NCBI GenBank assembly: GCA_964234715.1
Contig: OZ174285.1
DNA length: 64,000 nt
Source: Podarcis melisellensis
Lineage: Eukaryota
Reading direction: 5' to 3' (one strand)
The translations under genes were made by a program, and so were the position numbers. This document shows, in pieces, positions 4,205-59,748 of the stretch. Below the pieces are notes generated by a model that was given only the letters and a program-made list of their open reading frames with translations, made no database searches and was not told the DNA's origin. Within the stretch, counting starts at the first letter, position 1. The number at the start of each line of letters is the position of its first letter.

Positions 4205-4329
4205 CCCAGGAGCACCAAGATTTGAAGAACCAAGCGGTAGTGTGCCCAACCCTTTTTTGTGTGTTTTTGTAGCGCTCTGGGGAATTATTTCCTTTACCAT
4301 TCGTGCTTCAATTCATCTGGGGCCTGAAG

Positions 4330-4900
4330 AGGCGCAGAAGGAGGCCTAAAGTTACCTCAGACGACACACCCAACCAACCAACCAACGGGCCTTCAGGGCT
4401 TCTGAGGCAGAAAGCAGCGCGGAGCGGAGGCTGCCTGCCCTTCTTGAGGCAGCTTCTCTCCCTGACAGAAAGCCCGGCGAGCTCGGGCCGTTTCCGAGTC
4501 CGAAACCCCTCAGCTCCGCTCCGCTTCCTCAGCCCTGAAACGAAGCGTCTCCGGCTCGCTCCGCCTCCTGCCACGGTGTCCGTTATTGGGGGGGCTGCGG
4601 GGCCTACAGAGCCGAGACGCGCAGGCGCCGGGAGGCCGGGGGCGCGCGCCTCCCTCTCCAGGCCGACCGCGGTCTCCAGTCGCGGCCACTGAGGGGAAGA
4701 GGAGATGGGCCGCCTCGCCGCCCTTTCGCCCTGGCTGGTCGCGGCCGCGTGCCTCCTCCTGCTGGCGTTCGTCTGGGGGGCCGAGGGCTTCAAGAAGAGA
4801 GGACCCGCCGTGACCGCCAAGGTGACTATGGCTGGGTGGTCGTCCTGTCCCTCCCCTCTTTCTTTGGCTTGAGGGTCAACGTCTTTCCACGCCGGCCTCC
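4330..4900 (+). promoter_or_regulatory. PPIC: CpG island / PPIC promoter and first exon region
   Basis: Sharp rise in GC and CpG content around the PPIC start codon; inverted CCAAT (ATTGG 4585-4589) and GC-box-like motifs upstream of ATG 4705; good Kozak context gagATGG. Confidence 0.8.
4705..4821 (+). CDS. PPIC: PPIC exon 1 (signal peptide), MGRLAALSPWLVAAACLLLLAFVWGAEGFKKRGPAVTAK
   Basis: 117 bp; hydrophobic signal peptide followed by GAEGFKKRGPAVTAK, matching the cyclophilin C N-terminus; donor AAG|gtgact at 4822. Confidence 0.95.
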
Positions 4901-5328
4901 TCCTCAGAGTTTCCCAAACTTGGATTTTTTTTACTACAACTCCCGTCATCCCTGACCGCTGGTCTTTTTAGCTAGGAATGATGGGAGTTGTAGTCCGAAA
5001 AAAAACCCCAAACACAGCTGGAGAGCCAAAGGGGGGTTGTGGCGCAAGGAAAAATGCTGGCCACCACGTAGGCGTGCAGATGTGCTTGTAATGCCAGAAA
5101 ATTGCTTTTCCTCTCTATTTTCCAGCTGTGTGCTTGATGAATAACCAAGCTTTTTGGGGGTGGAGCGGGGCTGGAGGCGAGTGAGGACATCATCATCATC
5201 ATCGTTGTTGTTGTTGTTGTTGTTATTGTTAATTGAATTTATATACCCCCAGGTCTCAGGGCAGTTCAAAGGATAAAATCAGATGCTCCCATGTTGGGTG
5301 AAATTTATATTTTACATGCGTAGTAATA

Positions 5329-11224: not shown

Positions 11225-11353
<129 letters not shown>

Positions 11354-12491
11354 TAAATGTAAAAGATATAGAACTATGTAGTCCACCTGATGCCAGTGAC
11401 AAAGTCCAGGAATGATGTACAACAATCAAACAAATCCAGAATATAAAATAATCATAATTTTCTCAAATTTAGAAAAACCAAAATTGGTAACTGCTATTTA
11501 CTTAGTGGGCTCTATGTCACTGACTGATCAATAAACAACCTTCCTGTGGCATATGTAAATAGTTAATTTTATTGTGATATAAGCATAGTTAAGGTTAATT
11601 TACAGAAGAAAACACAATTGATCTGGGATTTAATATGAGAAAAATATTTCTATCTTGATGCAGCTTCAAAGAAGCAGTTCTCTTTTTCCTCCCCAAAACC
11701 ATTTCCCCTGTATATAGATAAGTTCAGCATTGGTAGTTGGAATTGGGTCCCACTGTGTTCAATTCTCACCACACTTGAGTGGAATAAATCCCATTGACTA
11801 GGTCTTACTGCTACTTACTGCAGATCCACAATCATTGCCTTAATGGTGTTGAATTTGAATGTAAAAATACAAAGTGAGGCAGAGAATTGTCATATTCTGA
11901 TTCAGCAAATAAAGCTTTCAGAACACATTTAAAGACTAATTTAGTACAAGAAGCAAGAATTAATTTCATTTGTCCTGTTCTTGCAGAGGTGACTTAAATG
12001 TAGAAGCAGACATCTGCATACACATCTCCTGTTCAGATCTTGAAATGAGTGTCAAGTTGGGCAAGGGATCTTTTTGTGTGCTGTTGGATAGAATGAGAAA
12101 TTAGACACATCACATGTATATATTTATTAAGCACTTGCATGACTAGCAATGTCAGGACAACTTGTACAGAAATTATAGGGATAGAATAAACTACTTTACA
12201 CTGTCCAAACCTAAGCCATACTTTTTTTGGGGGGGGCAGAATCTTCTCTTCATTACTATTTAAGGTAAAGCCTTAAACAGTAAATACCCTTAAAGTACTC
12301 AGTTTTTTTGTGCCCACTAATTATTTAACTAAGACAGATCCATAAATGAATCATTGCTGCATAGTAGATATTAGATGACTAACTACTGTGGAGAAACTGC
12401 CACTGATATGGGATGTGAGTATAAGCAAGGGGCAAAGCATGCTTTATTTGGCTCCCTCCCCTTTCTAGTCTGAAGTGTCTGGGGAATTTTA

Positions 12492-15400
12492 TTTTTTTTA
12501 TAATAATGTTTTTATTTGCTTTTTTCCAAGGTCAGATACATCGTCAATTATTCAACAAAGGCAGTTTTACAGAAAGAAAAGGAAAAAGGTTATAAGCAAA
12601 AAAAGAGATCTTACTTTACAAAACAATTTTTCATGATCTACTGGACTTCCCCACATCTTCCATCCCCTGCATCTTTTTCAATAAAATAAAGTTACAGCAA
12701 ATTAATACCTTGTTTCCTGTGTTTTGTACTTTCCTCAATTGTATATTAGGTTTAGGGGAAATATTGTTAGTTCACAATTCCAACAGTCCTCAATATAGAA
12801 ACTTTACCCTAGACTTTAGTCATTTCATCATCAGAACTTAAATTCAGCAATATCAAAAATTTGAAATCTGAAGCTTGTTGTCTAAAAACTTAACAAATTC
12901 TCAACATTCACATAACTTATAATGTTTTTGTAAATAGTCCTTAAATTTTTTCCAGTCCTCTTCCACTGCCTCTTCTCCCAGGTCTCGGATTCTGCCAGTC
13001 ATTTCGGCCAGTTCCATATAGTCCATCAGCTGCGTATGCCACTCTTCCAGCGTGGGTAGCTCCTGTACCTTCCAATATTTAGCCAATAGAATTCTTGCTG
13101 CTGTAGTTGCATATAAAAAGAAAGTTCTATCCTTCTTTGTCACTCTCTGGCCCACAATGCCCAGGAGAAAGGCCTCTGGTTTCTTAGTAAAGGTATACTT
13201 AAATACCTTTTTCAACTCATTATAAACCATTTCCCAGAATGCCTTCACCTTCGGGCATGTCCACCAGAGGTGAAAGAACGTTCCTTCAGCTTCCTTACAC
13301 TTCCAACACCTTTTATCAGACAAATGGTAAATCTTTGCAAGTTTGACTGGGGTCATGTACCACCTATATATCATTTTCATAATGTTTTCTTTCAAGGCAC
13401 TACATGCCGTGAATTTCATATCGGTGTTCCATAACCTTTCCCAGTCTTCAAACATGATGTTGTAACCAATGTCTTGAGCCCATTTAATCATAGCTGATTT
13501 AACTAACTCATCTTGTGTATTCCATTTAAGCAGCAAGTTATACATTCTTGAGAGCACTTTCGTCTTAGGTTCAAGTAGTTCTGTCTCTAATTTTGATTTT
13601 TCCACCTGGAAACCAATCTTTTTATCTTTTTTAAACATCTCTTGAATTTGGGCATAGAGAAACCAGTCTCGCACCTTGTCCTTTATTTTTTCTAAACTCT
13701 GCAGCTTCCAATTATCTCCAACTTTTTCTATTATCTCACAATATTTAGCCCAACCACTCTCCATGTTAAGTACTTTGGTGGTCTTCGCCTCCGTTGGTGA
13801 CAACCACCTCGGTGTCTTATTTTCAAATAAGTCCTTGTATCTAGTCCAGACATTAAACAAAGCTTTCCTGACAATATGGCTCTTGAACAATTTATGTACC
13901 TTTACCTTGTCGTACCACAAATATGCATGCCATCCAAAAGCATTGTTAAACCCTTCCAGATCTAGGACATCAGTGTTTTCTAGTAGAAACCAATCCTTCA
14001 GCCAGCAGAAGGATGCTGCCTCATAGTATAACCTTAAGTCCGGCAGGGCAAACCCCCCTCTTTCTTTAGCATCTGTTAGTATTTTAAGTTTTATCCGGGG
14101 CCTTTTGCCCTGCCAGACAAATTTCGTAATGTCCTTCTGCCACTTTCCAAAACACTCCACTCTATCCACGATCTGCAGGGTTTGAAACAAGAATAACATC
14201 TTTGGCAATACATTCATCTTTACAGCTGCAATTCTTCCCGACAAGGTAAGTTTTAGTCTTGACCAGATTTCTAAATCCTTTTTAATTTCAATCCAGCATT
14301 TTTCATAATTATCTTTGAATAAGTTCAAATTTTTCCCGGTCAAATTCACCCCCAGGTATTTCACTTTTTTAGCCACATTTAACTCCGTTTCTTTCTGAAA
14401 CTCATCTATTTCTAAAGAAGTCAGATTTTTCGCCAAAACCTTTGTTTTTTGTTTGTTCAACTTGAATCCTGCCACCTGACCAAACTCATAAATTAATTCT
14501 AAAGCTCTTTTAGTACTAGCTTCTGGCTCCTGTAGTGTTAAAACCAAATCATCTGCAAAGGCCTTCAACTTATATTGTTTACCTCCGACCTGTATTCCTT
14601 GTACCTCCCGATCCTTCCTAATCAAGTTCAGCAGTACCTCCAGGACCGAAATAAATAGCAGGGGTGATAGGGGGCACCCCTGTCGTGTTCCTTTTTCAAT
14701 TCTGAACTCTTCTGTCACCACATTATTCACTATCAATTTAGCTTTTTGCTCTGAATAGATTGCTTCTATACCATTTTGAAACGCCCCTCCCACTCCCATC
14801 CCTTCCAAATTTCTCTTCATAAATTTCCAAGATATATTGTCAAAGGCCTTCTCTGCATCTATAAAAATTAATACAGCTCTTGTGTTCAAATTTGTCTGTA
14901 GTAGCTCCAGAACATCTATAATGTTCCTAGTGTTGTCAGACAGATGTCTACCAGGGAGAAAGCCTGCTTGGTCTTTATGAATTACTTCATTCAGAACTTT
15001 TTTAAATCTACTTGCCAGAATGTCAGCAAAAATTTTGTAATCCACATTCAGGAGTGAAATAGGACGATAATTCTTGAGTTGAGTCTTTTCAGATTCCAAT
15101 TTTGGTATCAAAGTGATGAATGCTTCTTTCCACGATTCCGGAGCCCCCTTCCCCTCCATAATTTGGTTACACACCTCCACTAATGGTTGAATCAAATAAT
15201 CTTTTAAAACCTTGTAATATTTGGAGGTGAGTCCATCTGGGCCTGGGGATTTCCCCAATTGCATGTTCTGAATGGCACTTTCTATTTCCTGCTGTGTTAT
15301 TCTGTAATTCAGGGTTGTTTGTTTATCTTGGGATAATTTTTTCAATCCGTTACTTTTTAAAAATTGAATAATCTCCTCCTCCGCCTGTGGACCTTGAGTA

Positions 15401-16172
15401 AACAGTTTTTTGAAATATCTCTGGAAACACTTTCTAATTTCTTCTGGTTTCTGAATACTTTCTCCATCAACCTCCAAGTTGGTAATAGAATTCAATTTGT
15501 GTCTCTTTTTCAGCTGCCATGCTAATAATTTTCCACATTTGTTTGCTGATTCAAAAGATCTTTGTTTCATTTGTTTAATTTTCCATTCTACTTCTTGGTT
15601 TATCAATTTGGCATATTGTGCTTGATGGAACTTAATTTCTCTTAACACTTCTTTTGACTTTGGGTTAAGTCTAAGTCTTTTTTCACCCTCTCGTATCTTC
15701 TCTAAAATCTTATCTCTTTTCCCATTCCAAAGTTTTTTCTTAATAGAATTTTGTTGAATCAGAAACCCCCTCATTACAGCTTTGCTTGCGTCCCAGATTG
15801 TTCTCTTGTCCACCGGGGTATTCATATTGATTTCAAAATAATCCTTCAACGTTTTTTGGGCCTTCTTCACAAAGAAGGCATCTTAAGTTTAGATAGCATG
15901 TGCTGGGCTGGTGGTAGAATTACTGGCATTCTCACAGATTCTCCAGGGCTAAACGGGTTAAATATTTCTCTAGTTTGTAATGGTGGTGTAACCTTAGTTG
16001 ATAGCTTCTCATGTGAGCATCCTTTGTGTGCAACAGAGGTGGCCAGAAGCCTACTTACAAATTTCACAAAACATATTTATATACTTTCTAAAGTGTTTTT
16101 AGACAGTGATTGTCCCTATCAAGGAAGAACCCCAAAGCCCATTACTAGTTTTTAAAGAAATTTTGCCTTTTA
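12492..16172 (-). mobile_element. 5'-truncated L1-clade LINE insertion in PPIC intron 3 (antisense), with about 300 bp of non-L1 sequence at its 5' end
   Basis: TSD aagtgtctggggaatttt(a) at 12473-12491 and 16173-16191; AATAAA (12516-12511) plus short A tail on - strand; about 410 bp 3' UTR; empty site reads CT/AAAA on the - strand, similar to the L1 endonuclease TT/AAAA target. Confidence 0.93.
12901..15870 (-). CDS. L1 ORF2 fragment: reverse transcriptase and C-terminal CCHC zinc knuckle; APE endonuclease absent
   Basis: 989 uninterrupted codons with RT motifs KSPGPDG, YRPISLLNVDYK, IDAEKAFD, GTRQGCPLSPLLF, FADDL, KYLG, plus GGFALPDLRLYY and CWKC-x8-H-x4-C. The start is a truncation point, not a true initiation codon. 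Confidence 0.92.
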   Translation of the reverse strand: MKKAQKTLKDYFEINMNTPVDKRTIWDASKAVMRGFLIQQNSIKKKLWNGKRDKILEKIREGEKRLRLNPKSKEVLREIKFHQAQYAKLINQEVEWKIKQMKQRSFESANKCGKLLAWQLKKRHKLNSITNLEVDGESIQKPEEIRKCFQRYFKKLFTQGPQAEEEIIQFLKSNGLKKLSQDKQTTLNYRITQQEIESAIQNMQLGKSPGPDGLTSKYYKVLKDYLIQPLVEVCNQIMEGKGAPESWKEAFITLIPKLESEKTQLKNYRPISLLNVDYKIFADILASRFKKVLNEVIHKDQAGFLPGRHLSDNTRNIIDVLELLQTNLNTRAVLIFIDAEKAFDNISWKFMKRNLEGMGVGGAFQNGIEAIYSEQKAKLIVNNVVTEEFRIEKGTRQGCPLSPLLFISVLEVLLNLIRKDREVQGIQVGGKQYKLKAFADDLVLTLQEPEASTKRALELIYEFGQVAGFKLNKQKTKVLAKNLTSLEIDEFQKETELNVAKKVKYLGVNLTGKNLNLFKDNYEKCWIEIKKDLEIWSRLKLTLSGRIAAVKMNVLPKMLFLFQTLQIVDRVECFGKWQKDITKFVWQGKRPRIKLKILTDAKERGGFALPDLRLYYEAASFCWLKDWFLLENTDVLDLEGFNNAFGWHAYLWYDKVKVHKLFKSHIVRKALFNVWTRYKDLFENKTPRWLSPTEAKTTKVLNMESGWAKYCEIIEKVGDNWKLQSLEKIKDKVRDWFLYAQIQEMFKKDKKIGFQVEKSKLETELLEPKTKVLSRMYNLLLKWNTQDELVKSAMIKWAQDIGYNIMFEDWERLWNTDMKFTACSALKENIMKMIYRWYMTPVKLAKIYHLSDKRCWKCKEAEGTFFHLWWTCPKVKAFWEMVYNELKKVFKYTFTKKPEAFLLGIVGQRVTKKDRTFFLYATTAARILLAKYWKVQELPTLEEWHTQLMDYMELAEMTGRIRDLGEEAVEEDWKKFKDYLQKHYKLCEC

Positions 16173-17045
16173 AAGTGTCTGGGGAATTTTAGCAGCTCAA
16201 GAATCTGCTGTAAAACCGCCTGCAGTTGCCTGTTGCACTGGTTTCCAGCACTTTTCTGAACCCAGTACTCAAGTGGATGTATGTAGAGCAGGAGAAGTTC
16301 TGGTAATGCTGGCCCAAGGCAAAGGAAAAATGGTGCCTCATTCATTTACATGTACAAAAGTAAAGCAACATTTGTGAGTCCTATGATGCATCTATGGACA
16401 GCAGCCTAGTTTAGGGGGTGCAAGTTAGACATTGTTTACTTCCCACCCCCAGCTGTTGCTTCCGGGAGCAACTGCCTTCCTCTGCCTAATGTTAGGGCCA
16501 GGCCTTGCTTCTGTTGGCTTTTCAACTGCCAGTTACCTGCTTGGCAAGTACGGTGAATCCATTCCCGCTCTTTCCCATCTTATACATGATCAGCTGTGCA
16601 TCAGCTTGCAGATGCATACTCTTGATCTTGGCCAGGGTGGTATTATATCACCTTAGGGAACAGCACCCCCCCCCTCCAAAAACCATTTTTATGGAAATGT
16701 CTAGAAAGAGATGCAAGCCGATTCCTCCTATTGCTATAGTACGCAAGTTGCAGATTCAGTGAACCTTCATAATTTGTTAGTGCTGGGGAAGGGGGGGTGC
16801 ATTAACACAGCCAGTGCCTAATTACATTGCATGCTGGGATTGCTCTTACTGTTGCAGTTAGCATGATTCCTGGTAGCTGATTCAGCAGACTATCTAGGAA
16901 GTTCCATTTAGGTGCACTGGTGAGGTTGAGGCAGTTGAAGGTGTTCTGGAGATTCAGGTGTTGGCCTATATCTTAAACCCTTTTAGGGGGGAAAAAGTCT
17001 AAAACAAAATATTGTTTCTTCTGAACCTGATGTCTTGTTTCCCAG

Positions 17046-17230
17046 GAAAGAGCATCTATGGAGAGACGTTTCCTGATGAAAACTTTAAGCTGAAGCATTA
17101 TGGTATTGGATGGGTCAGTATGGCTAATTCTGGCCCAGATACCAATGGTTCCCAGTTCTTCATTTCTGTGACAAGGCCTGGATGGTTAGATGGAAAGCAT
17201 GTAGTGTTTGGGAAAGTCATTGATGGAATG
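17046..17230 (+). CDS. PPIC: PPIC exon 4, (G)[61 protein letters not shown]
   Basis: 185 bp; cccag| acceptor, |gtaggt donor; NGSQFF and [10 protein letters not shown] motifs (cyclosporin-contacting Trp retained); phase matches exon 3. Confidence 0.97.
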
Positions 17231-37530: not shown

Positions 37531-37703
37531 NNNNNNNNNNNNNNNNNNNNNNNNNNNNNNNNNNNNNNNNNNNNNNNNNNNNNNNNNNNNNNNNNNNNNN
37601 NNNNNNNNNNNNNNNNNNNNNNNNNNNNNNNNNNNNNNNNNNNNNNNNNNNNNNNNNNNNNNNNNNNNNNNNNNNNNNNNNNNNNNNNNNNNNNNNNNNN
37701 NNN
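37531..37703. other. Assembly gap (N run)
   Basis: Run of n characters. Confidence 1.
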
Positions 37704-39335: not shown

Positions 39336-39554
39336 NNNNNNNNNNNNNNNNNNNNNNNNNNNNNNNNNNNNNNNNNNNNNNNNNNNNNNNNNNNNNNNNN
39401 NNNNNNNNNNNNNNNNNNNNNNNNNNNNNNNNNNNNNNNNNNNNNNNNNNNNNNNNNNNNNNNNNNNNNNNNNNNNNNNNNNNNNNNNNNNNNNNNNNNN
39501 NNNNNNNNNNNNNNNNNNNNNNNNNNNNNNNNNNNNNNNNNNNNNNNNNNNNNN
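39336..39554. other. Assembly gap (N run)
   Basis: Run of n characters. Confidence 1.
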
Positions 39555-41044
39555 NTATCCATATGACATCTCAGTCCACAGTGGGATAGGAATCCTACAG
39601 CAGCCTTGTAAAAAGAAAATCAGACTGAAATAAGGAAGGAGGGAGAAAAAGAAATAAGAGGACACTTTCAAAATTCCGCTTTTAAAGGAACAGGATTCTT
39701 TGCCTGCTTGAGGAAAAGAAACTCAGAAACAAGACTCAGTTTGAGGGTTTTAAATGCTAGCAAATTGATAACTTCACAGATTATAGAACCTGGGTGTCTC
39801 TTTTTTTTGTTGGCTTGCTTGTGAAAGCTCCAGGCATTTCCAGCAGAATAGCTGTGCATGAAGTATTTTTGTCTACAGTTCAGTGTTCCAGCTCAAACAC
39901 CGAACAGTGAGCAATAATAAGAAAGCTTGACTTCTGTTGTTACAGATTGGAGTAATTCAGTCCATGTGAAAGGAATGAACACTTCAAACACCAGACACAG
40001 AAAACTCCCCCACAGCCACCCCCACCCCGGTCATCAAACAGGAAACATCTAACAATGGAGAAGCCTTCGCCATAAAGAATTGCTGCTCTGCCTTCACTAG
40101 CAATTATAGGCATATGAAATATGAATTGCAATTGATTTTTCTCCTAGGGGTCACTTGGCTCCATGTTTTATGCGCTCTAGGCATTTATTTGGGTGGCAAA
40201 CATGACACGTTTTTATAGAAGGAACTGAGCAATGTAATCCTTGCTCAATCAAAGGTACTTCATTGTAGTGCCTGTTCCCTGACACTTGTCCCTCCCTAAT
40301 TCACGTGTGTGGGATTTCTTAATAAAGGCAGGGAAAATGAAATTGGCAATTTAAAAGGCCAACACAAGGCAGACATTCAACACTTACTAACCCTTTCTGC
40401 ACTGATGACAAATGGAAGAAGCCTGACAACTGCGTATTACAGAGACTTGCAGCTTTATTCTGACATCATTCCAGTCTTCATTATATAGATGCTGTGTGCG
40501 CTCAACAAAATAAATGAAAGGAAACTGTGTATTTATATGCTTCATAAAATTGATTGAGGAATTAACGATTAATTGAGTCAACCTCTCACATTAAAACTAG
40601 TTTCACATACTGAATATTTTCTGCCCACACATAAAAAGCAGTTTAAAATTTGAAAACTAGACAGATTATACAGTCGTTTGCTTTTGCTCCGTGGTTGGTA
40701 TATGCTAAGCATACATATGATCTGGACACTTTCTCTTCCTATTTCACTGGAGTTGAAATTAGAAGGCCAATACTGGTTTTGTTCAGTAATTATGATTTAT
40801 TGTTCTTCAATGTAGCATTCATCTGGTTGCTAGCATGAGCAGTATTCAGGGATAATGAGCTCAGTCCAACAGCACCTGAAGGGCACCACTTTCTCTATCC
40901 CTCTGCCAAACCACAGTTTTGAGTTTTCAAACATGAAACCACAAACAATGGTTTAGAACTGCTTGTCTGATTCCTTTTTCTATCATCTTAGCACTCAGCT
41001 TCATAAGTTCACTCTGGTGTAGCAGATTCTGGAGGCAGACATAT

Positions 41045-44300: not shown

Positions 44301-46571
44301 GCTGAACTCAGTTTGAGCATACTAGGATGTAAGTGCATGTTCAGGTAAATCCTAAGGGGTGGTAGGAAGTGAACCTAAAACAACCTAATGAGGGCTGAGC
44401 ACGCTCAGTAGTCACAGACCTTTGGGGAGCGGTCAAAAAAGCGAACTGGGGGATGGGGTTTAAAACAGAGTATCCTACGCAGGAGATGACTACTTGGCTA
44501 GAGAGGCTGATTGCAAGAAGTTAAGAAGCCAACTGGCAAAACCAATACTTTTCTCTCTCACTTCCCCACTGTTTGGAATTCTTTCTTCATTTCCTCACTT
44601 CTCACTACTATGAACTTCTTTACCCGGACTTTGCTAGGCTTGGTGATGAATGGGAAACTGAAGGGGAGACAGCTGGCAGGCAGAAAGGAGAAGCTGGCTG
44701 AGAGAGAAGACAAGGAGGCATGTGGAAGCTGAGCTGTTATCTCTGTGCATCTCTTCCTACATTGTCCTTTTTCAATCCTTCCTTTCCCTTCCTTCACCCA
44801 GTGGATGCCGCAGAAAGAGAGACATTGAGTAAAAAGCGATGCAAGAAGAGACACATATAAGAAGTACAGAGAAGCCATCTCATTGTCAGATAGGACATTT
44901 CCTGTTTCATACATAGAATCTATTTTTAAATGTCCCCAGGGACTGACGGGAGAGCTGTCCATAGAAATCAATTGGGAAATCCAAAATTTAAATGTAGCTG
45001 TAACCCAACTCTCAAAAAAAAAAAAAACCAACAACAAAGAGAATGTCTCCTGCTTTTTCTAAGTCTTATTTATTAACTTTTTTTCTAAATAGCCTTGCAG
45101 TACTGCAGATCCCAAGGGGCATTTAACTGTCTCCTTGGTGCAGGTATCTATTCTATTTTGTTCCCACAAGCTCAGGAAACATACATTCCCCAGAAAGCTA
45201 CTCCGGACATTTTGGAGAGGGGCGGGGTCCTCTGGAAGAGAATGGGAGGTAACATATGGGCTGCAGAAGGAGAATTGGTGGGAAATCCGCTTTTCCGATT
45301 CTTCTAGAAGGGAGCTTCTATTAGGTTTTGGTCCTTTCCACTAGAGAATGGGCCCTTCCATTTCCAGAAGGACAAGTCTGCACCTAGCTGAGAACTTGGA
45401 TATATCAGAAGGCTTTAGAAATATTGCATTAAAATGTTACAATAGTTTCTAAAAAGTATATAGCAATATGGGCTACAAATTGGACAATGAATGGAAATAT
45501 CTGCAACCTGATAAACTGTAAACTATGGATTTTTTTTTTAAAAAAACTGCAAGCAAAGGCTTGCACCAGACTCTAAAATGTCTGTGCTGTGAGACAAATA
45601 ATAATTATTGGTGTTTTCTATAATTAGTACAAGAGAGTCTCCCATCTCTAGAAGAGATACAGTTAAATATACCAAATGCACTGGGACGGGGGAATAAACA
45701 CTGGTAAAAACTTTTATTGATGCATTCTATATCAAATACCAGAGAAATGTGCGCTCTCTCTACAGAATCTAAAAACAGCTGGTAGCAACAATGATGGATT
45801 TAAGTTATTAACAGATCAAAAAAAGATGGATGGTGTTCTGCTTTTCTTAATCTACATCATCATCTAGATCTATTTAAAGATATGTGGTGCACTAACAAAC
45901 TTAGTTAAGGTTTCGATAAAATCAGTAGCATAATCTGCCCCGTTACATTGAGTCTGCATTGATCAATAAAATCACTTGTACTAGGAAAGTACTGTTAAAC
46001 ACTGACAATCCTAGCCATTAATATTATTTAACACACTGTTCACAATCTTTAATGAGGATAAAGAACATTTTGTCTCTTTACACTTATCATACTGCCCTTT
46101 CTAGAGATCCTTATAAACACAGCACAACAGTGATTATTCAAAACTAATCGGGGTTTCAAAGGACGAAGGATGCTGAATAATTTTTTTGTAGGTTTTCTGT
46201 TTGATTAATAGATGTTTTCAGTGGTTTGCTTTTAAAATAGATAAAAATGAAGTTAAATAAAATTTGCATTCATTCTTCCCAGGATGAATGTCCATTCATT
46301 TCTACCCCTCAAGAAACCTAGCTTCACAGTTCATGCACATATACCTACTAAGGTGATGAAACCACAAATTTAAATGCTTTTTACTACCACATATGGAGTG
46401 TAAAAACAAGGCAATTTTACCAGAAACAAAATCTGAAATGCAAACATAAAGAAGTAGCAAGTCTTAACAAAAAATGAATTAATAAATACAAAATTATGAT
46501 TCTGAACAGATATTCCTAGATCCTGGGTGCGGTGACATACCATGTTTAGCGAGTGCTACTGCTATTTGTTT

Positions 46572-59123: not shown

Positions 59124-59445
59124 GAAGCAAGTGTGGTGTAGTGGTCAGAGCGCTGGACTAGGACCTGGGAGATCCAGGTTCAAATTTTGAATGTTCCAGA
59201 AGTCGAATGTTTCGGTTTTCGAATGCAGAAAACCCAGAAGTAAATGCTTCAGTTTTCGAACGCGCCTCAGAAGTTGAACGGGTTCCTCTGAGTTTCCCCC
59301 CAATTTTCTCTATTGAATTTGCAGACTGCTCTTTGTGCCTAGGTTTTCAAATGTTTCGGAACTCAAACAGTCTTCTGGATTGGATTACGTTCGAAAACCG
59401 AGATACCACTGTACTCTTTGGAGAAAAAGGTGGGAGACAAATGCA
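59124..59445 (+). mobile_element. tRNA-derived SINE head (59124-59184) interrupted by a partial Tigger-like MITE (about 59186-59411)
   Basis: tggtgtagtggtcagagc...ggttcaaat A/B boxes; MITE ends ...CCGAGATACCACTG|TA. Confidence 0.6.
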
Positions 59446-59748
59446 GTATATAAGCTCTTCTGCTTACCTGCTTAAGACAACTGGAGGGCCCTGCCAGATG
59501 GAGATGTCAGACGCCAATCTGGCATCCAGAGATCTCCATGTGGTCGCAATTGGACCCGCGCCAGTTGCAAAGATTCCTGGCACCTGGGGAACTTCGAACA
59601 ATGTTTTGGATGCAGAAGGTCCCAGGTTCAATCCAGGGCAGCTTCAGGTAGGGTTCAAAAAGATTCCTGCCCCAAACCCTGCAAAGCTGTTGGCTGGCAG
59701 TGCATGTACAACAGTGAGCTGCAGGCAGTGGTGAAGTCAGGTGATTTT

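Follow-up and report, generated by a model that had tools for sequence, protein, structure and literature searches.

Introduction

Unique sequence at the 5' end of an L1, inside one TSD, is known from human. Seventeen human mRNA/lncRNA-LINE-1 chimeras have been catalogued, 15 of them in the sense orientation (Law and Burns, Cell Genomics 2026, PMC13174262). Most carry first exons that end at splice donors, and these are joined to near full-length L1s (PMC13174262). The antisense chimeras are ascribed to twin priming, and the sense chimeras to splicing, ligation or template switch (PMC13174262). U6/L1 and other small-RNA/L1 chimeras, which are classical, are ascribed to template switch or RtcB ligation (PMC6789731, PMC4476161). 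Two further processes bear on such junctions. In the twin-priming 5' inversion (Ostertag and Kazazian 2001, PMC311219) a second segment adjoins the 5' TSD of a truncated L1. Snap-back synthesis is an in vitro activity of Pol theta and of bacterial non-LTR-type RTs (bioRxiv 10.1101/2022.03.14.484287).

The lizard insertion described here shares features with each of these systems and departs from each of them. Like the human mRNA/lncRNA-LINE-1 chimeras, it has unique sequence (the passenger) at the L1 5' end, one TSD, an EN-type site and a poly(A) tail; unlike them, its L1 is truncated in ORF2, the junction has no acceptor, exon and coding signals are both absent from the passenger, and the host is a lacertid. 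It resembles the U6/L1 chimeras in that the 3' part of a 5'-truncated L1 is fused to a non-L1 segment within one TSD. The passenger, however, is without an Rfam or tRNA match, and its length, about 300 bp, exceeds that of the small RNAs. As in the twin-priming inversion, the second segment adjoins the 5' TSD of a truncated L1, but the passenger is not the adjoining endonuclease-domain L1 sequence in inverted form, and only a trans version of twin priming, on another RNA, fits. Finally, the junction has the short inverted copy behind a 3' end, with a 4-nt loop, that is typical of snap-back by Pol theta and non-LTR-type RTs. In contrast to that activity, the lizard case is deduced from a single junction, beyond which come 290 nt of a different template. 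We consider it somewhat probable that the locus is a single-event L1 chimera, formed by target-primed reverse transcription (TPRT) in which a second, non-coding template was copied after the L1 RNA. Provisionally, it would be a further example of the class already catalogued in human.

Results

Structure of the insertion

The window, which is the whole 64-kb stretch of DNA that was analysed, contains only one L1. The parts of the insertion are the following:

12473..12491, no strand assigned: left copy of the TSD; ends in a TTTT/A endonuclease-type nick site; exact match to 16173-16191
12492..12900, minus strand: L1 3' UTR and short poly(A) tail, between the ORF2 stop codon and the TSD
12901..15870, minus strand: L1 ORF2 fragment; RT domain present, endonuclease domain absent
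15871..16172, no strand assigned: passenger, non-L1, about 300 bp, candidate second template; CpG-poor, no homologue, no RNA family
16173..16191, no strand assigned: right copy of the TSD; exact match to 12473-12491

The 19-bp TSD, identical at 19 of 19 positions in its two copies (12473-12491 and 16173-16191), encloses the L1 together with the passenger. The last bases of the left copy, TTTTA, are the usual L1 endonuclease nick site. Adjoining this copy is the poly(A) tail, which lies on the minus strand and appears as T8 on the plus strand (12492-12499); a polyadenylation signal, AATAAA, is found 12 nt inside the tail (minus strand, 12516-12511). On the minus strand, ORF2 runs without interruption for 989 codons before its stop (15870 to 12901). 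It spans residues about 258-1246 of a 1246-aa L1 family member, contains the RT domain (Pfam RVT_1, E 3.7e-38) and shares 91-92% identity with the ORF2 proteins of Podarcis muralis L1s. The 3' portion of the L1 is intact over 3.38 kb, with 5' truncation at ORF2 residue about 258. Because ORF2 has remained open for all 989 codons and is so similar to Podarcis L1 proteins, the insertion is young. With the TSD, the tail, the AATAAA signal and the TTTT/A site all present, this is an endonuclease-dependent L1 insertion by TPRT. The original prediction was that non-L1 sequence is fused to the 5' end of a truncated L1 within a single TSD, and this structure is confirmed.

The insertion is flanked by two exons of the host gene:

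11225..11320 (approximate), plus strand: cyclophilin exon on the upstream side of the insertion; covers Pro_isomerase profile positions 36-61 (E 1.6e-8)
17048..17230 (approximate), plus strand: cyclophilin exon on the downstream side of the insertion; covers Pro_isomerase profile positions 70-131 (E 2.2e-19)

The L1 thus lies in a cyclophilin intron, on the minus strand and antisense to the plus-strand host gene. Since the insertion is intronic and the L1 is antisense, there is no evident effect on the cyclophilin gene.

Some features of the rest of the window were recorded as well. It holds 23 ORFs of at least 110 aa, ten of which (112-213 aa) were scanned against Pfam. No match was obtained for those at 4308-4949 (minus strand), 44558-45037 (minus strand) and 59207-59734 (plus strand) or for the other seven, of 112-143 aa; these Pfam-negative ORFs may be relics of unclassified repeats. 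In 32 regions of the window a frame stays open for 93 codons or more. There are two runs of N, at 37531-37703 (173 bases) and 39336-39555 (220 bases), each shorter than the passenger.

The L1/passenger boundary

Alignment to 13 L1 family members places the boundary at a V codon (15870), and at most at 15872. The 13 members read ...FRDQEIVKKAQKT... at this point, with Q, E, I and V varying in more distant members, and the window reads *DAFFVKKAQKT. The alignment of the 1246-aa family member begins at about residue 254-258. One residue, the D four codons upstream of the boundary, is shared with the family and is judged from the alignment to be a coincidence. ORF2 homology had been expected to stop near 15873; it does stop at about that position, but the exact end is 15870, or at most 15872, and neither 15873 nor 15882. 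The in-frame TAA that had been noticed five codons upstream in the L1 frame is present at 15885-15883. An extension of the L1 into the passenger was rejected: in tblastn a few distant L1s reach 15945 or 16128, but they do so via stop codons and at low identity.

Homology searches with the passenger

When the passenger was compared by tblastn with 120 L1 ORF2 proteins, including the full-length protein that is 91% identical, both strands gave noise only against ORF2 and its endonuclease domain. This bears out the earlier observation that endonuclease motifs are absent from the frames read on both strands. Had a classical (cis) twin-priming inversion taken place, the plus strand should carry endonuclease-domain sequence, and the absence of such sequence there excludes this form; to that extent the claim that the passenger is not a twin-priming inversion holds. 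Nor was a second copy of the passenger found on either strand of the 64-kb window (blastn, word 7; the best match, 24 bp, is at chance level), again in line with the original prediction. Residues 258-1246 of this L1's own ORF2 and its 3' UTR are thereby ruled out as the source.

The passenger returned nothing in Rfam at E<=1 and nothing in a tRNA scan. An snRNA or small-RNA/L1 chimera was rejected on these grounds. A search for terminal repeats, a tail or a TSD belonging to the passenger itself found none.

Coding potential of the passenger

The passenger contains a minus-strand frame of 66 codons and a longer plus-strand frame of 93 codons. The former had been described as an exon-like open frame. 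The frame exists, but its exon-like character is not supported: it has no real homologue and its length is common in the window. Neither frame matched anything in Pfam or in a word-index search. A check of the minus-frame peptide for homology, which had been proposed earlier, yielded no true homologue in a length-limited word search, Pfam, PDB and Atlas. The exhaustive search by phmmer, against 1.84 billion representative proteins, covered the plus frame and returned P0121 as the sole match. This entry is a translated 52-aa tandem repeat, and its score is made up of eleven copies of one weak 23-aa match; it was rejected as spurious. In the PDB the plus frame had no match and the minus frame reached E 0.8 at best. 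In Atlas both frames fell under the recognition level that 91% of real proteins attain.

The lengths of the frames were evaluated against 299-bp tiles of the window outside the L1. A frame of at least 66 codons occurs in 38% of these tiles and one of at least 93 codons in 8%. The 93-codon frame has a p of about 0.01 against shuffled sequence, yet because 8% of real tiles match it, the frame was dropped as evidence of coding or of plus-strand sense. Judged from these frames and searches, the capture of a protein-coding exon is not supported, and the open frames would be no reliable pointer to the sense strand of the source. The tag|G site that had been proposed as a splice acceptor overlaps GTAAGT, which is equally readable as a donor. 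A separate plus-strand frame of 134 codons (15751-16155) starts in L1-antisense sequence, crosses the junction and extends into the passenger. It has the same sense as the host cyclophilin gene and shows no sign of use.

A hairpin at the junction

An inverted repeat lies on the junction itself:

15860..15879, no strand assigned: perfect 8-bp inverted repeat with a 4-nt loop (15868-15871), on the L1/passenger junction

One arm (15860-15867) is L1 and the other (15872-15879) consists of the first bases of the passenger. There are 26 comparable hairpins in the 64 kb, which gives a p of about 0.004 that the centre of one lies no more than 4 nt from a given position. The predicted stability is -10.5 kcal/mol (z -3.4) as minus-strand RNA and -7.8 kcal/mol (z -3.8) as plus-strand DNA, the latter being equivalent to first-strand cDNA. 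The position of the hairpin suggests snap-back or a base-pair-guided change of template, although it could be there by chance. That it is a true footprint is doubtful in our estimation. Such a footprint would have been left in one of two ways: by in vivo snap-back of a reptile L1 RT before the jump, or by a foreign RNA duplexed to the L1 RNA and joined to it in the loop. Duplexed RNAs joined in a loop would resemble the substrates of RtcB, the tRNA/XBP1 ligase.

The same inverted copy is open to a reading at the level of DNA. The passenger might be filler, either a genomic fragment or a repair-polymerase copy of distant DNA, that was captured when the cDNA was end-joined to the target. An 8-nt inverted copy at a junction is the classic signature of Pol theta-type snap-back repair, the composition of the passenger is like that of bulk host DNA, and L1 intermediates can join other DNA ends (PMC13526784). 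The 64-kb window, however, contains no template for such filler. Furthermore, repair-templated insertions are usually tens of bases long and not 300, which counts against this origin. We regard DNA filler as unlikely, albeit the best of the alternatives.

At the other end of the passenger, an 8-nt string, TAAAGTGT, which is found at 16086-16096, recurs over the boundary between passenger and TSD (16168-16178). This recurrence could mark microhomology at the 5' joining step; it is within chance, at roughly 0.06.

Base composition and the L1's own 5' region

The CpG o/e is 0.09 in the passenger, 0.10-0.11 in the flanking intron and 0.34 in the L1 body. This argument rests on about 300 bp, in which there is one CpG where the L1 rate would give about 3.7, and base composition and skew are uninformative beyond it. 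On the minus strand the passenger has more C than G, like the host intron, whereas the L1 has more G than C. The CpG depletion hints weakly at host sequence of an ordinary kind and long residence, as opposed to a young L1 5' UTR. In sequence terms the second template looks like CpG-depleted non-coding host sequence, for example an intronic, UTR or intergenic transcript.

These values bear directly on the possibility that the passenger is the 5' UTR or inter-ORF spacer of the L1 family itself, acquired through an internal deletion (a jump within the same RNA) or through twin priming with a wide gap. Of all second templates, the L1 RNA in cis is closest at hand, and a UTR would likewise show no protein homology. 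Both the CpG o/e and the C>G balance of the minus strand nevertheless match the host intron and not the L1, and the endonuclease-domain sequence that classical twin priming would have placed on the plus strand is missing. Coding parts of the 5' region fare no better: the exhaustive protein search leaves no room for an ORF1 origin in the plus orientation, nor do the 5-9 stops in every minus frame for a young coding piece in the minus orientation. An origin in the family's own 5' region is, in our view, distinctly improbable.

Spliced fusions, artefacts and double events

A host exon, or several, might have been spliced in cis or in trans onto the L1 transcript and the fusion RNA then retrotransposed. 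The majority of human unique-sequence chimeras are of such a type and in the sense orientation (PMC13174262), and the 5' end of the passenger abuts the TSD as the end of a full-length cDNA would. The junction itself speaks against splicing. The family has D-Q-E-I-V at this point, and because no Ile codon puts an AG before the retained (T)TGTG, the junction would have no canonical acceptor, as inferred from the family protein sequence. In addition, the human cases involve near full-length L1s while the lizard L1 is without ORF1 and the endonuclease domain, and the passenger shows no coding signal. We give a spliced fusion very little credence.

An assembly artefact, or a later second insertion that landed precisely where the L1 5' end met the TSD, is just as hard to credit, since the surroundings of the site are free of N runs (the closest lies at 37531), the passenger has no tail, TSD or terminal repeats of its own, and a chance landing on the exact boundary would occur about once in 3,700.

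Discussion

The reading that we favor, a single-event chimera made during TPRT, would begin with copying of the L1 RNA up to ORF2 residue about 258, at which point the first-strand cDNA would leave its template. Two routes for the departure can be proposed. The 3' end of the cDNA may snap back on itself for 8 nt and then move to the second template. Alternatively, the 8-bp duplex may hold the second template to the L1 RNA, so that the RT crosses over or a ligase seals the loop. About 290-300 nt of the second template would then be copied and the end joined to the target overhang. The orientation of the passenger would depend on the route: the sense strand of the source would be the minus strand after a forward switch or RNA ligation, and the plus strand after twin priming in trans. 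The assignment to the chimera class is provisional, being made by the structure of the insertion, and the class-defining step is the tracing of the passenger to its source.

The passenger shows no sign of coding capacity, and the insertion adds one case, in a lizard host, to a class catalogued in human. The insertion is very young, with an intact ORF and a perfect TSD, and both of its junctions are unblurred. If the source were found, the insertion could reveal the route by which a reptile L1 picks up foreign sequence, whether by template switch, ligation, twin priming in trans or repair filler, and the part of the hairpin in the mechanism could also be shown. Should either reading of the hairpin as a footprint be true, it would provide a sequence-level rule for the pickup of arbitrary host RNA by L1.
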